Below are positions 14,661 through 63,094 of a stretch of DNA of 64,000 nt, piece by piece. The notes under the pieces were generated by a model, which saw nothing but the letters and a program-made list of their open reading frames with translations, ran no database searches and was not told where the DNA came from. Within the stretch, counting starts at the first letter, position 1; each line of letters starts with the position of its first letter. The stretch comes from Dimorphilus gyrociliatus (Eukaryota > Animalia > Annelida). The translations under genes were made by a program, and so were the position numbers. The stretch is taken from positions 682,001 through 746,000 of the forward strand of contig CAJFCJ010000016.1 in NCBI GenBank assembly GCA_904063045.1, in the 5' to 3' direction.

Positions 14661-17600
14661 TTATTTAAATTCGTGCATACTTTCTGGTAAAGCCAAATTT
14701 AAGGACGGAAGAGGTTTATTAAAATTATCTTTACCATTTAACCAATAAGTCTTCATTATACCTTTTCCTTTAACTTCCCTCTCACCCCGACATTCAAGAT
14801 CGAATCCTCCAATTTCATCTAGATGATTTGCAGTCGTCTCACTCATTTGAATCCTTAGCGCTTTTATTCAAGTTTTAATATGATTAAATGTATATATGAA
14901 TTTATGTATTCAAAATAACTATGAAAAATCTATTGCATTCTATCTACCTAAAGAGGATGACTCCATACGACTGGCTGTGTTAACTGTATCTCCAAATAAA
15001 CAATATCTAGGCATTTTAAGCCCAACAACACCAGCAACGGCTGAACCTTGAATAATAGTACATTTATTTAACTACCATTAAATTGTTTAAAAACTCATAC
15101 CCGAATGCATTCCGACCCTTAACTGCAAAGTCATATCTGGCATATGCCTAATTTTGAAGTTAGAAATGTCCGACATTAAATGGAGAGACATTGACGAAAT
15201 TTCTGAGGCATGGAGAATTCCATTTCTTTCTGGTAATCCAGAAACAACCATATCTATTTTGAGAAAGGATATATAGTCTTATTTTATATTTATATAAGAA
15301 TATATTAATTACAAGCATCCCCAATGGTTTCCACCTTGTAGACATCGTAATTGTCAAGTATAGCGTCGAAACATGAATACAAGTCATTTAAAAGGTCAAC
15401 GACTTGAAGAGGAGTACTATCTCTAGCAATGGCTGTAAATCCTACAATATCGCTGAAGAAGATAGTAACACTGGAAAAAGTTTCAGGTTCGACACTTCTT
15501 CCATTCTTCAAGTCTTCAGCGACCCTCTTTGGAAGCATCTGGGAGATTAGCTGCTCTGTTTTACTTTTTTCAATCTGAAGTTCTTGAGTTCTTTCCGCAA
15601 CAATGGCTTCTAAGCTTGTTGAATATTGTTCCAGCTATAAATCAAAACCAAAATAGATAGTAACTTCGAAAAGAAATGTTGAATAAAAAGTATGTTTACC
15701 ATAGAAACAAGATTATCAATCAGTTCACCCTTAACAGGGTTAATCTTACTTAATTTATCGAGTATTCCCTTGAAATCGGGGCGCTTCTTTGGGTCTTCGT
15801 TCCAACATTCATGAATTAAACTATTCACTTGTTTGGCAATCTCAATCTTATCTGGTAGTTCCTCTTCATTTATTCTTGGTCTTACATTTTCATTAGGATC
15901 ACCTCCGTGTTTTATCCAGGCCTATATTACGTGAATATAGTAAATACTATTATTATGAAATTCGTAAATAATAAAGTAATATATCATACATCAAAAGCTG
16001 TTTTGACATTAGTTGAGGTTTTATCTTTGACAAGACCTATAATGTCAGCTACTTCAATGTAAACCAATTCATTTTCAAATGCACCGCAACGACTAGCTAT
16101 TTCAGAAGCAATAATTGCATATCTGTGAAACACGGAATCGTTAGGTTTGTTTAGAAGTAATAACAAGTTCTTACGAGTAAACTAATGATGTTTTCGTTGG
16201 TAATTGATCATTGAGCAATTCTGGGCTCGTCCAAAGTAGTTCATTATCATTTTCAATTTCTTTGTTTATTAGAAATAGATCAGGTAAAGGAGGACGAATC
16301 TTGCAGGTCCAACGATTATCAATAATACATTGGCTTGATTTGATAGACTTGATTATACCAAAATGATTTTCCAGATAATCGAGACCTCTTGCGATATCTT
16401 TTAGGATAGAGAATCTAAAATCCCAACTTAATTTAATACTATCATTGGCTATAATGTCGTCAAGAGAGCCCTTTGAGCCAATTTCATATAAGATAGATAC
16501 ATTTGGGGATTCCAAACAAGCTCCAATAAATGATATTACATTCTTATGCCGAATTTCTCTCAATTTCAATATGCTATGCTTTATATTATCAACAGGAATT
16601 GATGGGCATTTTGGAAACTGTTTACAAAACACCTTTTGACTTTTCCATCTTACTACGTTAGCTTTAACGATTTCAGAATCTGTATTTGATGTTTTCAGAC
16701 TAACAGCTGATAGATAAGATACGGCTATTTTTAGGGCTTGAATATCTACCCAATTAACAACCCAATCGAGATTTAATAGAGCCGCTTCTCTTGCTTGGCG
16801 TTTAAGATACCATCGAAATAAGATGGCCAAGAAAACAATTAATGCTAAACCTCCAAGTACAGATGGTAGAATAACTAGTAATAATGATAAATCGCAACTA
16901 GATCCAGTGTAAAGGCCTTGACATTGGCAGGTATCTGGTGCAATACATTTACCATGTTCTTTATGGCATCCAAGTCTAATATGGAAAAAAAATTATTAAG
17001 AAGTTTCACTCCTTGTTAAACTTTACCTGCAAATAGCTTCGTCACATGCGCTGCCTGTCCATCCTGCATGGCACTGGCAAACTTCCGGTGTCACACATGT
17101 GCCTCGAATACAAGAAGAACAGATAACTTTTGAGCAATCACTATTCTCATAACCGGGACTACATTCACATTTTCCATGCTCGACGCATTTGCCAAATTGA
17201 TAAATATTTATATCATGTACATCTGTTTGATTACCTCCACACCCTTGGAGACAGAAATATGGTGCCATCACTAATTCTGTTCTAATGTGTTCAGATTCAG
17301 GGTCAGCTTCTCCATTTTGCGGAACAACTTGTTGAATAATTTCATCAAATACTCCCTTGTAAGACAAGTAACTATCAGAGAAAGATGAAAAGATTTGTTA
17401 TGATATTTAGGGCAAAACGTAATATTTCATTATTAATATATTACTTTCTTCGATTAAGAAACGTTGAATTTGGATAGAAAGTTACTTGATATTTCCAATT
17501 TAATGGCGGTATACTAAAATATATTGGAGCTAATGTTATCAATTCAATTTGCTTTTTGGAGGATTCATTCTCCATAATAAAGATCTTTGGTATAGTTATT

Positions 17601-20600
17601 AACTACAAGAGAATGAGAATTTTTATAAATAGATAAATGATTTATAGTTAAATAGTTTTATGAGACTAACACCAAGTCCTGGAGCGAAATATCTTCCTCC
17701 CAACGTAATAACAAATCCCATATAGCCGTGCCGATCTCCACTTTTGGTATAAGTAACATTTTGAGTTAATCCATTAAAAGAAAGCTGTAAAGCCAAGTGA
17801 TAAATATATGTATTCTGCAATATATATTCTCACTTGTCTAAGGGCTTCAACAACGGCTACCCCAGTTATTGTTTGATTTTTTGTTAAAGGCTCATTTATT
17901 GCCATTGCTAATGAAATAAGAGCGTCATATGCAGAACCTTTTTCAGCTACCAACTGAGTAAAGAATGTAATAATAGTACAATAAATGTTTCAGCTATATT
18001 TTATACAGTATAATATTACATTTTTTATTACTTACCCTAGTATCAGATGATAGTACTACACCTGAATAAATCGTCTTATCTCTGTTAGAGAACTTTTCCA
18101 TGAGACGATTCCATTGGGAACTAGATATACCACCAACAGAGTACAGTGGCCAAAAAAGATGCATACCAACCATTCCTTCAGTACATGTATAAGGAGACTA
18201 ATAAAGCAAAAGACCTTATATTAGATTAGCAACAGCAAATAATTATAAAAAACCATTTTGCAGAAAGGATGCTGATCGAGAATTGGAAAAGATTTCGTAG
18301 TAATACCGGCGGTAACCCATAAATAGCCATGAACTCCAGCCACTTCATAGCTAAAAGAGAAAGATATAATTATTTCATTACAATAGAAACATTGTACTTG
18401 AACACGTTAAAGTGATTTTGTATAGACTTTTTCTAGTAATTTTTAGGCCATTCCATCGAAATTAAATAATTAATATGTGTAATTAACTTATTTGCTCACA
18501 TTATTGCTGCTCTAGTCACATAGTACAACAAGGGAGGATTCATGTATAAATATACAATACGGCTAGCCGCTCGAGATATTCTTTGCATATAAGGCTTTAA
18601 AGGTGAAAAATCTTGTGAAGTATAGTCTATATCGGGAATGGTTATCTGCAACGAAAAACAGGGTACTTATCTATTTTATTATCAATAGAACAGAATAAAA
18701 ACCTCTTCGGTGATTTTAATTCCATGCAAGCTAGCCTTTTCATAGAAAGAGGACGATAATCGTAAATTCTTATATCTTACGATAATCTATTAGAAAATAG
18801 AGAAAATTTTATTTAAAAGGAAATTAGGATAATAAATTTTAGTTCTTATTAACAATTGATGTCCATTTACGTTCTTTAAATGATAATAGTATACTATTGA
18901 GTTGAGAAGCTTCACTATAACCAATTCTATTGTAGAATGGGTAGAATTTCTAGCAAATAAAAAAGAGAGACTGGTCACATTTTAGTAACAATAAATCTAA
19001 CGTCATATTCATTTAATACAATTACAAGGCCATGTTGATCTCAAAGTATAAAAATAGTTTGTATGTCTATTTTTATATTATGTTATTTACTTTATCGCTA
19101 AATTCTGCTCTTTCTTCCCTTATTGATAGTTGAGGCATATGATCAGCATTCAGTATGTGAGCCATCTTTTCAGTTATCGTATCATTATCGAAACCGATGA
19201 TGGCGGCCAATCTTTTCGACGGATCTTCTTGTGCTAATTGTTTTGATGATTCATATACTTCGTATGCCACTTTATCATCATTTTTATGATCGGCTTGATA
19301 AAGATGAAGGGTTCTTCCTAATTTCATGACAATGCGAGAATTTCATTCAAGTTATACCAGAATACTTATACTATCTATTATACCTTGTAATAAGTTAGAA
19401 AAGACTCCATTGTTTATGTCTTCAACAGCAAAATTCACATAAGTAGAATGAAAGCTTTGAACCAATGCCGCAACAGAGGAATCAATTGTCTTATCGAGAA
19501 TATGGCCGATATAAATATCATCTAATTGATGAAATAATTAATAATTTATTATCAAATTAATAGAAAGATCTTGTTTCATTACCTGTTACTTTTAATTCAA
19601 TATATTCAGTTGTTTTGATTGTTGTTCCTGATATAGCGCTGGTAGTTTCAAATTGTAATCGAACAAATGAGATTTTATTGCATATTGATCCATCATAAGT
19701 GCCTCTTCCTTCTTTTAATAAAATCTTTGAATCGATGGATAAGCAAGCAGTATTGGGTGTTAATACGGCTCGAACTATCTGGTATTTAGAGATGATTTAT
19801 TGCTTAATCAATTATATATTATAAAAAGAAATCATGCGTCTGTAGAGTATGCGTTGAGGTGTATACTCCGTGCATTATATCATTCTACATATATTATGTT
19901 AAAGTAGGGAATTTATAGCTTAATTTAATGTTTTATACTAGATTGCTGTTTTTTTAGGATTATAATTTTGTTAATGATGGAAAAGTTAATCAGTGCTTTT
20001 CCCCCATTAAAATCACTACAATAACGCAAAAAAGAAGATTTCATGTTCTATTATAAAAAATGAAATCAAAGAAATTTCCTTTTATTTATTTTCTTTTGAT
20101 AAAAAAAATTATAGAATAAAATTTCTTAGGCCTACCAATTTGCTGTCAGGTCCTGACCATATTCGACTTGACGATGCATCTCTTACTTCAATTATTGGCT
20201 TTTCGTAAAGTTGAAAATTAGCGGCTACTTTCGATCTTATATCTTTCAAGTTTACTATATGTATGCTGGTAGCTTCAACAGCTTCAACAATATTTAATTA
20301 AGTAGGATTGGAATTTTAAATAGATATATGTAACTGTTTATCTACCTTGAACTTTAATGGGTCTGCTTAGAATGAATCCTGGGCCTTCAAGATAGTCGGG
20401 TGGTAGAGTTAACAAAGTACCAACCGATGAACTGGTAGCAATGTAGAAATCTTTCTCTGAAAATATTTCAGGAGTCCTAATTGTAAAGCCATGAGGTCTC
20501 AATAAGGTGACATTTAGTCGAAGACCATCTTGAACGTCTAATAGTCTTATGTTCTCGAAGGTAGCTATGCCCTTATTAGCTCTAACAACTTTAATTAATT

Positions 20601-22408
20601 CATTAGTGGTAGCACTTTTATAGACCCCCTCTCCAGACAGTCTTTGCTATTTGATAACAAATTAAACTCATGTCTAAATACATATTTTGAGAATGGAACA
20701 AACATATTAACCTTAGTTTCGTGTTCAATAACCAACACACCGCTGTTGAATAGTTTATGCTGCCACGCAACAGTTAACATGACATATACGGTTGATTCTC
20801 CAGTATCAACTATTTCTTTACCTAATTTGTTTACAACTTGAATTTTTAAATCAAACTTAGAATTAATATTAATAAGTTTAGAGGGTTGAATTATCCATCG
20901 GGGCTGCCATGCCGGGTCTAAAAATAGAAGAAAATTTCATATATCCCTTTTGTATATTTATACATCTATATATACTTTACATATATTGTAAACACACATT
21001 AATATGTAACATTTCTAAAGGTAATGATTCTTAGAAAAGAAACTCACCCCAAACACGAAAGCCATTAGTATAACTTTTAATTGTACCTTCGGAAGTTTTT
21101 ACAGTAAATTCAATGTGCCTCTTCTTACTTGGAGCTAAAAATTGAGGATGATAATGCCAATACACGTCAAGTATTATTCTTCCTTTGATCACATTCGTTG
21201 TCAAAGTACCATTAACACCACAAGCCTGTCTTTTGAACAGATTTTCGTTTAATTAATTAATTTCAGCGATAAAATCTCAAAGAGAGAAAAAGAGAGAAAC
21301 ATTTTCATGTCTTACTTTCCATTATAAAAGTCAAATCTTGTTGGAAAATCTTGAGTCGACTGAGTATGCCAACATAGATTTCCTCCACTTTCAATCCAGT
21401 CATCTTTGTAGGACGTCTTACCTATGGCATCAGTTTCAATTGATCGATAGGTCACCTGTTTTGTTGTTTCATAAGAAATAAGATACAACTATAGGATATT
21501 CATAAGAATAATCAATTAACTCATTCTCAAAACATAATACTCTCTTTGATAACAATTTACAGATTTATAGATATTCTATAAGATCTGTAAGATACGGCTA
21601 TATCTTTTATAAATTTTCTTATTAGTGTTTTAATGAGGATTTCTAAGTATCTTTCGAGGGGTAAATTAATCCATTGTCATTTGTAATCATAAAAGGGTAG
21701 GAACACTCAGAAACAACAAAGTATATATGTTGATAAATTTTTACAAATTTTATATTATTATTTATTTAAAGTGACAACAGTAAAGTCTATATGTTTAGTA
21801 TTATGACGAGTCAGAGTTTTCACTCTTAATTGTACTTATTATCTTTACAAAAGATTCTAATATCGACATTTTTCTACTACTTTATTAGACGATAATAATC
21901 AAAATATGATTTTTCCTTTGCATGAAACATGAATATAATAGTATGTTGTCTATAGATTTATATATCACGCAAAAGTTACTACTTTTTTCCATACTTGTGG
22001 AGATTCATCTTTTGAAGTTGAACCTTTAAACGTATTATTGTTTTGTGAACTTGGTATAGCTCCTTTCTATTGAAAATATAAAGTACTATTTGCTAACAAA
22101 CATATATAAAGTATATATATATGTGCACAAATGCTATAACTTATATAAAAAAACAACGACGCTGATTAGGGATGGGGAACATATCTTACCGATGCTGAAG
22201 CATCACTTCCAGTTGTTAAACGTTGTCCATTCTTCATTAAATAGGCAAATATTGGTCTTATTACTTTTTGATTCAAACCGACACTATAAATTTGATTCTC
22301 ATCTGTAGGTATTATTTTAGGTGGTGAATAAACGCTATCGAAGACTAGAGTTATTGCACAATTTGTCAATTTAGTCAGTAAAAATATTCCTATTATCTTC
22401 ATCTTCAT
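14661..22408 (-). CDS. Receptor (transmembrane) guanylyl cyclase: signal peptide, Ig-like repeats, ANF-receptor/Venus-flytrap domain, 3 EGF-like repeats, TM, pseudokinase, cyclase domain
   Basis: Cyclase motifs [29 protein letters not shown] and [24 protein letters not shown] carry the GTP-specifying Glu and Cys. Kinase-homology domain ([24 protein letters not shown]). [28 protein letters not shown] repeats ~16890-17250. VFT motifs AVEDINN, AAIIGFD, PQLS...FSDK|[10 protein letters not shown]-terminal [18 protein letters not shown] signal-like segment. Short phase-consistent introns throughout. Confidence 0.92.
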
Positions 22409-24155
22409 TCGGCTAGAGGATAAGTTATAATGTCAGTTCGTCTACAAGCGTCAATTTTAATTAGTACAGTATCGGAAAAAAAACTGCTTTTTCACAAAGT
22501 GACGCCCCGCGAATTAAAGACGCAATCGTCAAAGAGCATCATTTTTTATTCCAAAAATGAGCTGTTGATTAATTACGATAAAGTTGAAAGAAACGTACTG
22601 AGTAGCTGAGCTAGTGCCATCTTGAGGAATATCGAATAAGATACTTGTAAAAAAAGGAATAACGTTTTCTTATAGAGCCGATAATTAACAGCTAGACATG
22701 GCATAGTGTTCAACAACAATTTCCTCAGGACACAGAACATTAGGCCTAGATATTGTACAAATGTAATGTACTATATAAAAAATGATGGCTGCAACATAAA
22801 TAAGGATTCCGCTACATTTACTTTTAAATATAGCTTAATCTTTAGAAATATAAGGAATAATAGTGAATTTCTTGCATGGTTTGTTCTGCATTAGCAGTTC
22901 TTAAGGGGAATGTAATACTGCTCAATAGCAAAAAAATTTCAAATTAATTATTAAGGTCAAGCTTGCAAAACAAACCTATAGGAAACGGGCGATAATTTCT
23001 AAAAATACTCTACTAGTGAATGAAAGTATTCGCTCTTCCATGACTTGTGAAATAGTAAAACCTTTTTAGTCCTTCTTATAAAAGAATTTATCTACTTATA
23101 ATCCTTTATCTTTTATCTACTAGTGACAATGTTTGACAGGGTAGCATAGTATTATTGTCTTATGCTGGTGGAGCCCTTCAAAACGCTGTTTCTTTATACT
23201 GTATATTTCTTTTTACAAACTCTCTGAGGATAAAAGATGTAGGAAGTGAGGAAAGCAAGGAAGGTAGTTAGTATAAGGGGAAAGCGGAGAAGCAGAAATA
23301 AATATGAGATAAAGAGAGTTAAAGAGCTATGAAGAAGAGCTAGAGTGGATAGCATAGTCAAATAAAAAGTGCTGGGAAGTGAGCGACAGAAGTATCTAAA
23401 AAAAAAGTCAAAGGATGCTCTCTTAGAGGGAAGGGACTGAAACTGTTTGCTCTAATACATAATTAGACGTAGTTTCCCCTACAGTTGTAGTCCACTATTG
23501 CTCAGAAGATACAAGTGAATGAAATACAGATTAATATATTTCTTTCTAGTATATAGTATTTCGGAAATATTCCATTATCTTGTCTTTAAATGTGGGTTAC
23601 AGAACTAAATTTAGCACAACAAGAACTTAGTCACGTGTTTAAGTGTCCTCTAAGAATATTGCGATTTTAGTAATTTATTAGAAATTTACAAATTAAATAG
23701 TAGAGTAATTTCATGCTCATCCTATCTTCCAGAAGTGTACATTAGGTAAAAGTTACAAGAAATAGGCCTATGAGGGTCGTTTTGGACTATTGGTGTAATA
23801 TTTCTGCTAGATTTAGGTTAAAAGTGAGAGCTTTTATTAATTGTAAAGAGGAATTGCAATAGTTTAGGATTTCGCTAAATGAGTTATGATAATTAATATC
23901 ACTTTTGATTATTTCTTTATATATTTATTTATTAATTCCTATAGATATACATATATTCATATATATATATATATATATACAGTATATATATATATATATA
24001 TATATAATTTTGTTCTAAATATAGCGGCGGAAGTAAATATTAAAATATTAAAATTGTCATACGTTTAACAAGTATATAAGAGGCTAATAAAGCATTTTGC
24101 ATGGCGCATATATACTAGTAAGCATCATAACCTCTTACGTTGCCTAACAGCCACC

Positions 24156-24585
24156 ATGCTTACAAGACTGGCTATAGTCTTTCTTCTCTTATTTTACATT
24201 AAAGCCGATGACCAGGTAATAAAAAATTATTAACAATTTAGCCAATTATCTCAGTGTATTAAAAAATATAAAAGAAAATTTATTTAATTTAATTTATCTT
24301 GCGTTTTATTCAACTTTTTCATTTAAGGTAGCGATATTAGCAGCATTTTCAAGGCTACTGTATATATATATATACATAGATTTATAAATATACATATAAA
24401 TATATATATATATATGTATATATTTAAGTTATAAATATAAAAGCCTTTTTTTGATATTTAATGTATGTATTATGTACACAAACTCTGTTGGTTGAATTTA
24501 TCTCAAGTCATGTTTTAACACTTTTATTTAAGTCTTTAGCTATGTTTTCTTTTGATAAAACTAGATATATGGTTTATACTTATCA

Positions 24586-24624
<39 letters not shown>

Positions 24625-25162
24625 TGTTTGCGTTCCGACTAGCAATATCAACCGTCTTTATTATATACTATATATGCTTGTTTTTTCAACGGAAGGTTAT
24701 ACCCATCAGAATTTGATGGTGAACTCAAGAAATATATATAATTATTTATATATTGTATATTTCACATATACTAATTGATGAAATAACGAAATTTGTTTAT
24801 ATTAACTTTAGCGTTCTTGTTGTGGTCGAGGTATTAAAAATATTCAAAACGTTGTACTGTGTCCGGAACATTGCTGCCTAGGATTAATGGAACATTGGAG
24901 TAATGCTCCTGGATTAAAGATAACTTGGTGTGATTTTCCAGATTCGGATAGGCCTTTTATGTTTAAGGTAAATTGTAGCAGGAACTATGCTTACAACTGT
25001 ATAGTTTTCTTTAAAGTATAAGGTTTATAGATAAAATGGATATCTATATATACATTATATTTTTCCTTCCAGAGAAGTACTAGCGCCAATAGACGTAATT
25101 ACTTTCCATCATCAGTAAGTTCAGTTTCTTTTATACTTTCTCGCAAAGAGAGCGTCTTGTAA
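24156..25162 (+). CDS. Small secreted cysteine-rich prohormone-like precursor (~101 aa, 3 exons; not in ORF track)
   Basis: Exon 1 (24156-24215) follows a perfect Kozak GCCACC-ATG, encodes the signal-like MLTRLAIVFLLLFYIKA-DDQ and ends CAG|GTAATA. Exon 2 (24812-24967; actttag| ... AAG|GTAAAT) is a stop-free phase-0 156-nt exon: RSCCGRGIKNIQNVVLCPEHCCLGLMEHWSNAPGLKITWCDFPDSDRPFMFK. Exon 3 follows the strong acceptor ttttccttccag| at 25073: RSTSANRRNYFPSSVSSVSFILSRKESVL*. An alternative donor GTAAGT at 25115 makes the C-terminus uncertain. Confidence 0.6.
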
Positions 25163-26002
25163 AAAGTCAAGTTTTAAAAAAGAATCTTTTTATCTATTCT
25201 CTCTTCAAATTTACATGATGAAAAAAAGAGAATGTTAAATTCTGATTGAATATAAATAACCCTTAAAACCATTCATTTCATTTTCTATATTAAATATACA
25301 TTTATATAAACATATATATATATATACTAAAATTTTCATTCAATATGAAGAAAGTCTTAATCAATCTATATTTTTTTCTCTTAGAAAAAACCCGGAAAGG
25401 AAATAAATGAAAGAAAAAGGCGGGATACTTTAAAAAGAATTTTAAATAGTTCTCGGTAGACAATCCATAATATATATATATTTTTTCTGGATAATTCGGA
25501 TCTTTTAAGGGCTGCAAATTGCCAATTAAAGTCCTTTGTGTTGTGTCAATTGTCAAAACAGAATATTTTACAACGAGGAAATATTCACATAATTGATATA
25601 TTCATTCATAGAATTTATAATATATTCTAATAGTTTTACTTTAATAAATGTTAAAATATATATTTTTTATGAAATAATATTTATGTAAATTACATTAAAA
25701 CCTTTAAATTTTATTGATTTGTTGGGGGAGTATTGAAATTTAACGCATATTTGTCGTTCACTTCCTTTGAGTGTAAAGTAAAACTTTCCGACGTCTTTGA
25801 GGGGATAAATTCTAAACTTAATAAAATGTAAAAACGCCATCTATCGATTAAATTCTTAGTTCTTTTTATTAAAATGGGTTCACTGTCTCGTGATTCGGTA
25901 TCAATTACACATTTATTTAGTTTAATTGTAATTAATCATAGCAATGATTTTTCCTTTCTCTCTTCTCTTTCCTTCCAAGAATTCTGAAAATCAAAGGAAT
26001 TC

Positions 26003-27273
26003 TTAAGATTTCCGGAAAGGTGTGGTAGACGCTTCGAATGCTTCGTCTAGCATCTGCTTTATTGTGTTACTACATTTGGCGCCTTCTAGGAATTCTTTCA
26101 GAGACAACTTTTTATCTTTGTTTATGTCCGCTCTCTCCAATATATAATTAGCCAAACATTTCATCGAATGCTCATCAACTTTTCCTCGAAGATTATGTAG
26201 CGACTACAGATGGCGTTAACAGTTATTAATAAAAAAGAAAATATCGTTTATGCAATGTTATATAGAAAAAAGATATCTGTGAGCTGTCTATGTATACATA
26301 TACAGGTTCTAGTCTATACGTACGATTATACAGTATACGAAAGTATATACACTATATACACTTGTTATACATATTATGTATACTCTAGAACTTGTATTAT
26401 AGAAATTAGAATGTATTATACATAATTTACCTTGAGCATTTGCCCTAATTCATCCTCGGTTATATAACCAGTTCCATCAATATCATACATTTTGAATAAC
26501 CAAGTTAATTTCTCCTCCAAAGTGCCTCTCTTTTGTATATGAAGTGAATTCAAGAATTCTCTGAAATCAATACGACCATTTCCATCTCTGTCATACGTGC
26601 GAAAAACGTGTTGGGCAAACTGATTGGCATCACCAGTGGGGAAGAGTTTAGAATAGATTTTCTTAAATTGATCGCGGGACATCGACATGCGACCTTCCGG
26701 ACATTCCTTTAGAAAGTTTCTATTGAAAAAAAGGAAGGTTCTTTTTTTATCAATGTCTTCTTAAAGACATTCATTGGATAGTCTATTCCTATAGTTTATT
26801 ACTTAGAGAGTAATCTGTGTGTCGTATAGCAGAATAAGTTAATCTAAACAATATTCTTTACTAAACAGAAACAATTACGATAAGAGGAATTTAGAAATGC
26901 TTTGTCATCTAATTTAGCAAATTGATTGATCTAATCTTTTCAATAGATTGAACAAGAGCTAACAAGTTATCAAAATTGAAATATTCATGTTGATCGTTTT
27001 ATGTATGAAAGTAGTCAAAAAAAATAAGGAATTCACTTCTAAGATAAGACATTATGTAGATAAGGCTTAAAGAATGTAGGAAATATACTGTACATACAGT
27101 TTGTATTGTATATCTTCATATTTGAATAATATTCCAAGCTACCAAAGATACATAATTTACTTAGACATGTCAATGTACCTGTAATATTCTCTTATCTCAT
27201 CAGCGTTAAAAGCGGTGCTCTCTTCCAAATCCGTCAGGACTTCCGGTCTCAAAGCAGATGCTTGATTACCCAT
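26003..27273 (-). CDS. Neuronal calcium sensor family protein (hippocalcin/neurocalcin/GCAP-like), 194 aa, N-myristoylation motif
   Basis: Exons 27273-27179, 26719-26431 and 26203-26003 give 585 nt in frame. Features: MGNQAS (Gly2, Ser6), LRPEVLTDLEESTAFNADEIREYY, non-binding EF1 KECPEG, EF2 DRDGNGRIDFRE, RGTLEEKLTWLFKMY, EF3 DIDGTGYITEDE, EF4 DINKDKKLSLKE. Confidence 0.93.
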
Positions 27274-27902
27274 AATTAGTTGAAGTCTAATGTATTTTGA
27301 TTACCGGCTATCACTCAGTAAAGGATAAGGAATCGACTTATCATTAATTTATCATTAAGACAGTAGATGTCGCTAAACTGAGATAAGAGTATATATAAAA
27401 AAAAATAACTGGTAGAAGGATATGGAGATATTTCCTCTTCACCTTTTTGTTCCCATAATTTATTTTTACAAAGAACTACTTAAAAAGAAAATGTCATTTG
27501 ATAAAAAGTTTTATGATTGATGGAAACATTAAAAAAAATCTAGAAGTAGGATAAAGAAGAGAAAACCGAACACGATCTTTTTCTTAAAGGAAGAAAAATT
27601 CTCAGAATGCTTTTTTACTCTAGATTATTTCTATAGAATTGTGATGGATTAGCAATAGAAATTCACTAGCCCGTTATAATCTTTCATTCTCAATTCTGAA
27701 CAAACGAATAAGTAATAGAATACGAGCAAAGTTTTTTCTGGAGAGTAATAGAGCATAAAGCTATCTATATCTATATTATTTAAGTTCTTTCTACTACTTT
27801 TACACTATAGGATGGCATTTCTCTCTCTCTATCTTCTCTATTTCTGTCTATGCTATTCTTTTATTCTCTTCTTTCGTTAAGTCATTAATTTACTAAACTC
27901 TT

Positions 27903-62059: not shown

Positions 62060-63094
62060 TCATAATTCAGTCGGCTTATTCCTCATTTTCTCAGTTTCTG
62101 ATTCTTTTCCTAAGCTTTTCCTTTGGCATGTTCGTAGCAATTGTATGGAACTTCGGCGATGATTTACATCAATTATTAAACAGAATAACGAATTGAATGA
62201 AAATTGTACGGTATTTGCCAAATTTGCTAAGCTTAATGAAAATCTAAATGCTAGGGAATATTCGTGATCGCATATTAAGAGATCAACTAAATCTAAAACC
62301 TCACTAGGCGTTGCCAAAATGGCAATCATCAAAGCCAGAACAATAGCCGCTATAAGAGCTCTTCTGGTAGCCTTCTTCGTCCTAGTACTTTTTGAAATGG
62401 AACATGTTCTTAATTGCTTAGTTATTAAAACAAAGCAAAAGCAGAGGATTACTAGTGGTATAAAAAATCCAATTGTTGACCAGGCTAATTTATATGCCAA
62501 CTGCTTGCTCTCTTGCTTAGATGCACCACTCTCTTTTGGGACTATTGTGGACCATTTTGTACCATTCGTATTATTCCATCTGTGCGACTGCTGTGTAAGA
62601 AAATCTGGAACGTGTCCTAAAACACAAATAAAGAAGAGCGTTAGAGTGGCCGCTGATAAATATCGAGGATGCACAATTATTGCTGCCAAGTCACTCCAAC
62701 AAATGCAGCAGTAATGGCATAGTACAATTAAAGTTGCCAATAGAACGGATAATCTGGATAGCATGTTCAACATTGCCGTACTATATAGGGCGTAGTAAAA
62801 TGTGAAATTCTTTTCTTCAAACCAAAACCGATTCGCGTCTTCGCTTGCTTTTGGTATGGCCATTATGCATATCAGAAAATTAGACATTGCCCAAGATGTT
62901 AAACAAATTAATAACGACCTCTCGATCGATATTCTAATATAAGAACTATGATTTGGCCATTTTTTTGAGCGTCTAGCCTCCTCCGAGAAAACTATACGCG
63001 ATGTGAATACAACAACGTTTAAGAAGTTTCCTAAGACGCCGCAACAGCTTATTAGAGGTATGGCAATATGATCAATAACATTAGTTCCCGTCAT
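62060..63094 (-). CDS. Divergent orphan class A GPCR (FMRFamide-receptor/B0563.6-like superfamily); an upstream coding exon is possible
   Basis: 344-aa ORF with seven hydrophobic segments. TM1 IPLISCCGVLGNFLNVVVF, IERSLL before TM2, TM6 ILATPSE, TM7 NLANTVQFSFN. The N-terminus before TM1 is very short, and an in-frame phase-1 acceptor (ttctcacag| at 63118) precedes the ATG. Confidence 0.8.
   Translation of the reverse strand: MTGTNVIDHIAIPLISCCGVLGNFLNVVVFTSRIVFSEEARRSKKWPNHSSYIRISIERSLLICLTSWAMSNFLICIMAIPKASEDANRFWFEEKNFTFYYALYSTAMLNMLSRLSVLLATLIVLCHYCCICWSDLAAIIVHPRYLSAATLTLFFICVLGHVPDFLTQQSHRWNNTNGTKWSTIVPKESGASKQESKQLAYKLAWSTIGFFIPLVILCFCFVLITKQLRTCSISKSTRTKKATRRALIAAIVLALMIAILATPSEVLDLVDLLICDHEYSLAFRFSLSLANLANTVQFSFNSLFCLIIDVNHRRSSIQLLRTCQRKSLGKESETEKMRNKPTEL

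Follow-up and report, generated by a model that had tools for sequence, protein, structure and literature searches.

Does a six-cysteine peptide read from the genome of the annelid Dimorphilus gyrociliatus come from a real gene, and to which kind of molecule does it belong? The question is raised by a locus at positions 24156–25162 of a stretch of 64,000 nucleotides (assembly GCA_904063045.1, contig CAJFCJ010000016.1, positions 682,001–746,000 of the forward strand). This whole stretch is called the window here, and positions in it count from its first letter. A first-pass annotation, made from the letters alone, had proposed at this locus an unannotated secreted peptide precursor with dibasic cleavage sites, perhaps a new neuropeptide, hormone, pheromone or toxin-like family, with a faint echo of eclosion hormone. 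We consider it probable that the locus is a real, compact gene whose three exons encode a preproprotein of about 101 residues, that it belongs to a conserved unnamed family, and that its product is a secreted mini-protein, most likely an extracellular signalling ligand and not eclosion hormone. The cysteine framework, which is undescribed, and the unnamed conserved family are new; the general kind of molecule, a disulfide-rich secreted mini-protein, is known.

Direct reading and translation confirmed the initial observation (coordinates in table 1). The perfect Kozak ATG is there, the exon 1 translation contains a signal peptide ending in IKA, and exon 2 contains the cysteine framework. A KR site forms exactly at the exon 2/3 junction, with an RR site after STSAN. 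By inspection, the signal peptide has a charged n-region (R4), a hydrophobic core of 11 residues, I at −3 and A at −1, and the paralogs described below are alike in this respect. The exon 2 translation, RSCCGRGIKNIQNVVLCPEHCCLGLMEHWSNAPGLKITWCDFPDSDRPFMFK, holds the whole domain with the framework CC-x12-C-x3-CC-x17-C, and all six cysteines are kept in relatives. The KR site is split over the junction, K being the last codon of exon 2 and R73 the first codon of exon 3, while RR lies at 25091–25096, directly after STSAN. The surrounding DNA is AT-rich animal DNA (24–35% GC per 2-kb bin), and an open reading frame of 105 amino acids inside intron 1 (24461–24778) is low-complexity.

The window gene has relatives in its own genome. 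A search of the 77.9-Mb assembly (349 contigs) with the exon-2 peptide turned up a further pair of exons, arranged in tandem on contig C12 (E 8.6e-9 and 4.4e-6). A family profile search of the genome returned exactly three loci, the window gene and these two paralogs. The paralog signal-peptide exons (MVMFSQTWSAVFFFCLFSSYTYVSSE and MSPKSDTLFLLFLLISFSYSEDQ) each stop at GT and end in ..EDQ or ..SSE directly before the domain exon, as in the layout of the window gene. Their domain exon of 47 codons begins one codon before CC and holds the six cysteines. In the paralog P2, about 103 bp of intron separate the domain exon from a last exon of 29 codons, the same length as exon 3 of the window gene. 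The P2 junction reads LK/EA (the slash marks the exon boundary); the terminal K of the domain exon is kept and R is absent.

Relatives were also found outside the genome. When a profile of the three paralog exons was compared by HMMER with a library of 1.84 billion representative proteins, 13 matches came back at E ≤ 1e-3. Twelve are clusters of short proteins with the same six cysteines (E 1.5e-11 to 8e-4); the thirteenth, a repeat protein, is spurious. The sole named cluster is the Lingula anatina 'uncharacterized protein LOC106174919' (XP_013412146/7), and the others derive from JGI/ENA environmental or eukaryote contigs. Lingula LOC106174919 shares the cysteine framework with the window peptide, and exon 2 is 49% identical to it over the 39-residue CC..WC core (pairwise BLASTP E 2e-12). 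Aligned by hhalign, the three paralogs of the window genome and four environmental members matched with a probability of 97.8%. In a word-index protein search the Lingula domain matched only itself, and the full-length family alignment matched only members already known.

The Lingula gene also resembles the window gene in its exons. It has a signal exon, a 45-codon domain exon (AMCC...WCAVDK) that is phase 0 at both ends and, like exon 2 of the window gene, begins two codons before CC, and a last exon of 15 codons. Its domain exon ends in K (AAG/GT), as in the window gene and P2. The Lingula gene differs in its tail, AYVKGGRNNSFLFLQ, in its junction DK/AY, which forms no KR, and in an annotated N-terminal extension before the signal peptide that is without counterpart in the window gene. 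The shared exon architecture supports both predicted junctions of the window gene model (24215/24812 and 24967/25073).

A scan of JGI metagenomes added 27 loci in three subfamilies, which begin CCMKGLK.., CCPRGPK.. and CCNEGFK..; in the last of these A replaces W. A single copy among the relatives carries Q in place of E. The full core is held by 26 of the 27 loci, and all 26 have an AG 2–4 codons 5' of CC, in most cases as part of a clear pyrimidine-rich acceptor (such as TTGCAG/, TTACAG/ or TTTCAG/). The gene plan of the family is a signal exon, a phase-0 intron 1–4 codons before CC, a single domain exon and a short tail exon, and the window gene has this plan. Two environmental full-length members, P0009 and P0022, have a hydrophobic signal-type N-terminus and the domain in one uninterrupted open reading frame. 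In alignments of 15 sequences Cys17, Cys21-Cys22, Cys40, K9, E27 and W39 (exon-2 numbering) are invariant, and the first cysteine pair and G7 nearly so. Across the family the framework is CC-x12-C-x3-CC-x16-20-C, accompanied by the conserved residues G, K, E and W/A; the window peptide shares all of these. The members are three genes in the Dimorphilus genome, LOC106174919 of Lingula anatina and several subfamilies on environmental eukaryote contigs.

Some environmental members showed features of their own. P0022 lies on a 1.5-kb JGI contig, Ga0170824_127615924, and carries a signal-type N-terminus, a Q-rich propeptide, the domain and an RLRKR site. This contig looks like a spliced transcript, and we take its data set (Ga0170824) to be a forest-soil metatranscriptome. 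Contigs of the Ga0056xxx and Ga0209xxx series are presumably from samples of gutless marine oligochaetes. In Ga0209788_1014473 (2001–2320) and in P0001, two six-cysteine domains stand in one open frame with about 10 residues between them; some relatives may be two-domain proteins or have a tandemly duplicated exon.

Selection on the core is strongly purifying, while synonymous sites saturate. By the Nei-Gojobori method, the ratio of non-synonymous to synonymous change (dN/dS) of the roughly 40-residue core between relatives is 0.02–0.25, and one pair differs at 23 of its 24.3 synonymous sites but at only 1 of its 92.7 non-synonymous sites. The 12 protein clusters, the 27 metagenome loci and the low core dN/dS show a conserved unnamed family, which bears out the earlier suggestion of a new one. 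The first-pass annotation had also been unable to assign the framework, and here too no named family matched. Pfam gave no fitting family for the window exon or 15 family members, a PDB sequence profile search gave no relative of the family, and the ESM Atlas yielded nothing usable, by features or by shape. The Lingula accessions and locus names were not found in the searchable literature. The family motifs were absent from the covered portions of the supplements to a study of brachiopod, nemertean and phoronid neuropeptidomes (PMC8557429), and likewise from what was covered of four supplementary files of the Dimorphilus genome paper (PMC7854359).

To model the fold, AlphaFold2 was run on the family alignment with two independent targets, the window domain and the Lingula domain. 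The window domain model (mean predicted local distance difference test score, pLDDT, 87.8) has DSSP strands at 7–11, 26–32 and 35–41, and the Lingula model (pLDDT 88.0) has the same three strands at 10–14, 28–35 and 39–46. Both predicted models are three-stranded antiparallel beta mini-domains, as in knottins. In the mechanism that we propose, the N-terminal 17 residues would act as a signal peptide for the endoplasmic reticulum and be cleaved after IKA (A17). The exon-2 domain would then fold oxidatively into a three-stranded beta mini-protein with three disulfides and be secreted. Its most likely role would be that of an extracellular signal, a hormone or paracrine factor acting on a conserved receptor, in a ligand family that would be spiralian and undescribed. 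In the window copy only, a prohormone convertase could cut at KR, trimming the tail and releasing a peptide of 54 residues.

Several points weigh against the reading as a secreted signalling ligand, and the first concerns expression. On comparative grounds (paralogs, relatives, exon plan and constraint) the window gene appears to be real, with transcription and junctions as predicted features. One sequencing run of unknown kind, of 60 M letters, holds 27% of sampled window words and may be low-coverage DNA; this share is compatible with exon-only coverage and with sparse DNA coverage alike. For Dimorphilus itself, RNA-seq and CAGE data are described in PMC7854359. Could the locus then be a chance reading frame or a decaying copy of the family, with no functional gene? 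The want of RNA support would fit this, as would a control comparison in which a single-exon G-protein-coupled receptor (GPCR) of the same window was present in the protein collection and the spliced peptide was not. The absence of the spliced product agrees with the locus being unannotated, without proving it. However, the window copy keeps all six cysteines as well as the G, K, E and W that the family conserves. The frame is open over three exons with canonical GT/AG borders and phase-0 junctions at conserved positions, a signal peptide and Kozak ATG are present, and the core identity with Lingula is that given above. Since exon 2 finds two genomic paralogs and protein relatives with all six cysteines, the peptide is more than chance, and we hold a nonfunctional copy to be very improbable.

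The second group of points concerns the 3' end, the tail and the breadth of the family. The third exon is a predicted 3' end. A strong GTAAGT within it, joined to a strong acceptor near 25383, would add KKPGKEINERKRRDTLKRILNSSR, as far as the letters tell. Because the Lingula gene and P2 both end in a short third exon, use of this donor is less likely, and there is little room for an extra 3' exon because a converging calcium-sensor gene ends near 26005. Among family members KR and RR are limited to the window copy, and the tail sequences are not conserved; P2 and Lingula have LK/EA and DK/AY at the corresponding junction, and in some distant members RKR or KKR stands about 20 residues further on. 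The idea of a neuropeptide precursor with dibasic cleavage therefore fails as a family trait. What stands of the first interpretation is a secreted-type six-cysteine peptide of a conserved unnamed family. Taxonomic breadth is uncertain, as the exhaustive search of the 1.84 billion proteins held no annotated mollusc or other annelid protein.

The third group concerns structure and function. Foldseek gave no significant match for the model against the PDB (best E 1.7). In an exhaustive VIA-align search, inhibitor-cystine-knot (ICK) peptides topped the lists of both models with Z values of 3.4–3.8, under the caution level of the tool, and for this reason we use the wording 'knottin-like' for the shape and do not claim a demonstrated knottin. 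These weak superpositions have a root mean square deviation of 1.8–3.0 Å and cover 35–38 of 37–39 residues. They include J-atracotoxin-Hv1c (1dl0; Z 3.4–3.6, 1.8–1.9 Å, 35–36 of 37 residues), Hc3a (8uwf; Z 3.3–3.8), tachystatin B (2dcw; Z 3.0–3.5) and conotoxin GS (1ag7; 29–32% identity). The alignment with J-atracotoxin suggests that Cys1 or Cys2-Cys5 and Cys4-Cys6 may be kept, with the third bond rerouted to the N-terminal CC pair, whose other cysteine would join Cys3. With the framework CC-C-CC-C, no more than two of the disulfides could correspond to those of the ICK knot, which has three. Finally, the function, receptor and expression site of the peptide are wholly inferred.

These structural matches raise the possibility of a defensive or effector knottin, such as a tachystatin-like antimicrobial or a channel modulator like the ICK peptides of spiders and cone snails, acting in mucus or on surfaces. 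We regard this as unlikely, with more in its favour than a nonfunctional copy. The best structural matches of both models are ICK toxins and tachystatins, Pfam gave a weak match to Toxin_24 (E 0.71), and the family is multigene with tandem copies. However, toxins and many antimicrobial peptides are usually under diversifying selection, and dN/dS here is low with synonymous sites saturated. By residue count of the exon 2 translation the mature window peptide is net acidic, not a cationic antimicrobial. The cysteine framework is CC-C-CC-C and not the C-C-CC-C-C of ICK peptides. The two identified hosts, the brachiopod Lingula and Dimorphilus, are non-venomous. An endogenous ligand is favoured over a toxin or antimicrobial on three grounds: a core that has barely changed between deeply diverged copies, the net acidic charge of the window peptide, and hosts that, where identified, are non-venomous. 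Of the earlier description 'toxin-like', the predicted knottin-like shape holds, and the very strong purifying selection speaks against the rest.

If the peptide is an endogenous signalling ligand, there is a reason why such a family would have been missed. Catalogues of spiralian neuropeptides and hormones lean on similarity to known families and on cleavage motifs, and a ligand that consists of one disulfide-rich domain and lacks conserved dibasic sites escapes both routes. A core of about 40 residues that is nearly frozen amid saturated synonymous sites implies a conserved binding partner, which makes the family a concrete candidate, as an orphan ligand, for efforts to deorphanise receptors of annelids and brachiopods. 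Its cysteine framework, which the searches made here matched to no named family, would sit on a knottin-like scaffold.

The features of the locus and of its neighbourhood are collected in table 1.

Table 1. Features of the peptide gene, its tandem paralogs and neighbouring genes (window positions unless a contig is named).
Feature	Position	Strand	Remark
TATA-like box TATATAAG	24073–24080	+	76 bp 5' of ATG; from sequence; weak evidence in a genome of 26–30% GC
Start context GCCACCATG	24150–24158	+	read directly
Kozak context GCCACCATGC	24150–24159	+	from sequence
Exon 1, coding, translation MLTRLAIVFLLLFYIKADDQ	24156–24215	+	donor GT at 24216
Predicted signal peptide MLTRLAIVFLLLFYIKA within exon 1, then DDQ	24156–24206	+	from translation
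Intron 1, 596 bp, GT..AG, phase 0, (TA)n-rich	24216–24811	+	acceptor AG 24810–24811
Exon 2, 52 codons, phase 0 at both ends, terminal K (AAG/GT)	24812–24967	+	donor GT at 24968
Conserved core CC-x12-C-x3-CC-x17-C (CCGRGIK...ITWC)	24818–24931	+	alignments of relatives
Intron 2, 105 bp, GT..AG, phase 0	24968–25072	+	acceptor AG 25071–25072
Exon 3, coding, 29 codons and stop (25160–25162), variable C-terminal tail	25073–25162	+	translation RSTSANRRNYFPSSVSSVSFILSRKESVL
Internal GTAAGT, possible alternative donor after ..NYFPSS	25115–25120	+	from sequence; strong
Tandem paralog pair, about 1.4 kb between	C12:490476–493066	-	exon plan of the window gene; third exon defined for one copy
Receptor guanylyl cyclase gene	14664–22432	-	head-to-head with the peptide gene; 1.75 kb between the two
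Cyclase gene, cyclase domain exons	14664–15634	-	domain match
Cyclase gene, kinase-homology, transmembrane and EGF exon	16174–16992	-	
Cyclase gene, further EGF exon	17026–17397	-	
Cyclase gene, start-codon and signal-peptide exon	~22169–22432	-	
Neuronal-calcium-sensor-type EF-hand gene	26006–27300	-	converges on the peptide gene, about 840 bp between stop codons
Calcium-sensor exons	~27160–27300 (MGNQASAL.., myristoylation-type start), 26419–26760, 26006–26203	-	
Single-exon rhodopsin-class GPCR (PF00001)	62063–63094	-	
Second single-exon GPCR-like reading frame, 304 amino acids	37732–38646	-	

The rhodopsin-class GPCR has a counterpart, a protein of 270 amino acids with 82% identity (P0025), in the Logan assemblies, and public sequence data therefore exist from a close relative of Dimorphilus.

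The receptor guanylyl cyclase that lies head-to-head with the peptide gene invites the question of whether the two are partners. A search with PF00211 found 111 exon-level cyclase-domain matches in the whole genome, with several loci in tandem clusters (C22, C33 and C62). We estimate that they represent about 50 or more loci, which for a 78-Mb genome is a large set of guanylyl/adenylyl cyclases. The paralogs on C12 have their nearest cyclase at a distance of about 33 kb, and the ectodomain of that cyclase is unrelated to that of the window cyclase. No cyclase was found within 10 kb of the Lingula ortholog, nor within the 2 kb of sequence flanking each of the 27 environmental loci. Binding of the window peptide to its neighbour is thus suggested by adjacency, and the idea gained no support otherwise. 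That the family is an unrecognised spiralian hormone family, with the window copy as cognate ligand of the head-to-head cyclase, has a very low probability in our estimate. If true, it would be a new pair of peptide and guanylyl cyclase, with a fold unrelated to eclosion hormone, natriuretic peptides and guanylin.

The same neighbour bears on the echo of eclosion hormone (EH), which the first-pass annotation had itself called weak. On one reading, to which we give the lowest probability of all those considered, the window peptide would be a highly divergent EH-type ligand, possibly acting on the guanylyl cyclase 1.75 kb upstream, whose start-codon exon (table 1) is nearest to it. The presence of EH ligands and of their guanylyl cyclase receptors has been reported for annelids as well as other lophotrochozoans, the ligands always with six canonical cysteines (PMC6660194). 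Like EH, the window peptide is a single-domain six-cysteine secreted peptide of similar length, and it shares the sub-pattern C-x12-C-x3-C. In the window copy only, ..PF follows the last cysteine by about nine residues; in the portion of arthropod EH sequences covered, an F likewise stands nine residues after the last cysteine.

The differences outweigh this likeness. The spacing C-x3-C-x2-C-x12/13-C-x3-C-x10-C, again from the covered part of the arthropod EH sequences, is not that of the window peptide, which has only C-x12-C-x3-C in common with it. CC stands in place of the first two cysteines of EH (C-x3-C-x2-C), and there is an extra cysteine after Cys4. The Pfam model of eclosion hormone (PF04736) gave no hmmscan match at E ≤ 10 to the window exon or to 15 family members. 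In a six-frame search of the whole genome it gave no match at the window locus, and two weak matches elsewhere (14–15 bits) are EGF or laminin-type repeats. The EH-like tail DFPDSDRPF occurs only in the window copy, the paralogs, Lingula and the environmental members having unrelated tails, and the predicted window and Lingula models are all-beta, whereas eclosion hormone is regarded as helical. The distances from the Lingula gene and the C12 paralogs to a cyclase, in a cyclase-rich genome, also argue against the pairing. We rejected eclosion hormone as the identity of the peptide on the profile search, the cysteine spacing, the tail confined to the window copy and the predicted beta fold. The caution first attached to the resemblance was well placed.

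Two other groups of known molecules offer comparisons. With ICK peptides the window domain shares a predicted compact three-stranded antiparallel sheet, three predicted disulfides, a match that covers nearly the whole toxin and a similar local motif, C-P-x-x-CC-x-G. It differs from them in having no sequence-level relationship and in belonging to a family under strong purifying selection whose hosts are non-venomous where identified. Agouti/AgRP and the agatoxin-like peptides of arthropods likewise have no sequence relationship to the family and differ from it in cysteine number and framework, and AgRP (1hyk) is among the weak structural matches (Z 2.0). These are small disulfide-knotted secreted ligands that act within the animal itself, on receptors or channels of its cells, and we take them as a working analogy for what the window peptide and its relatives may be.

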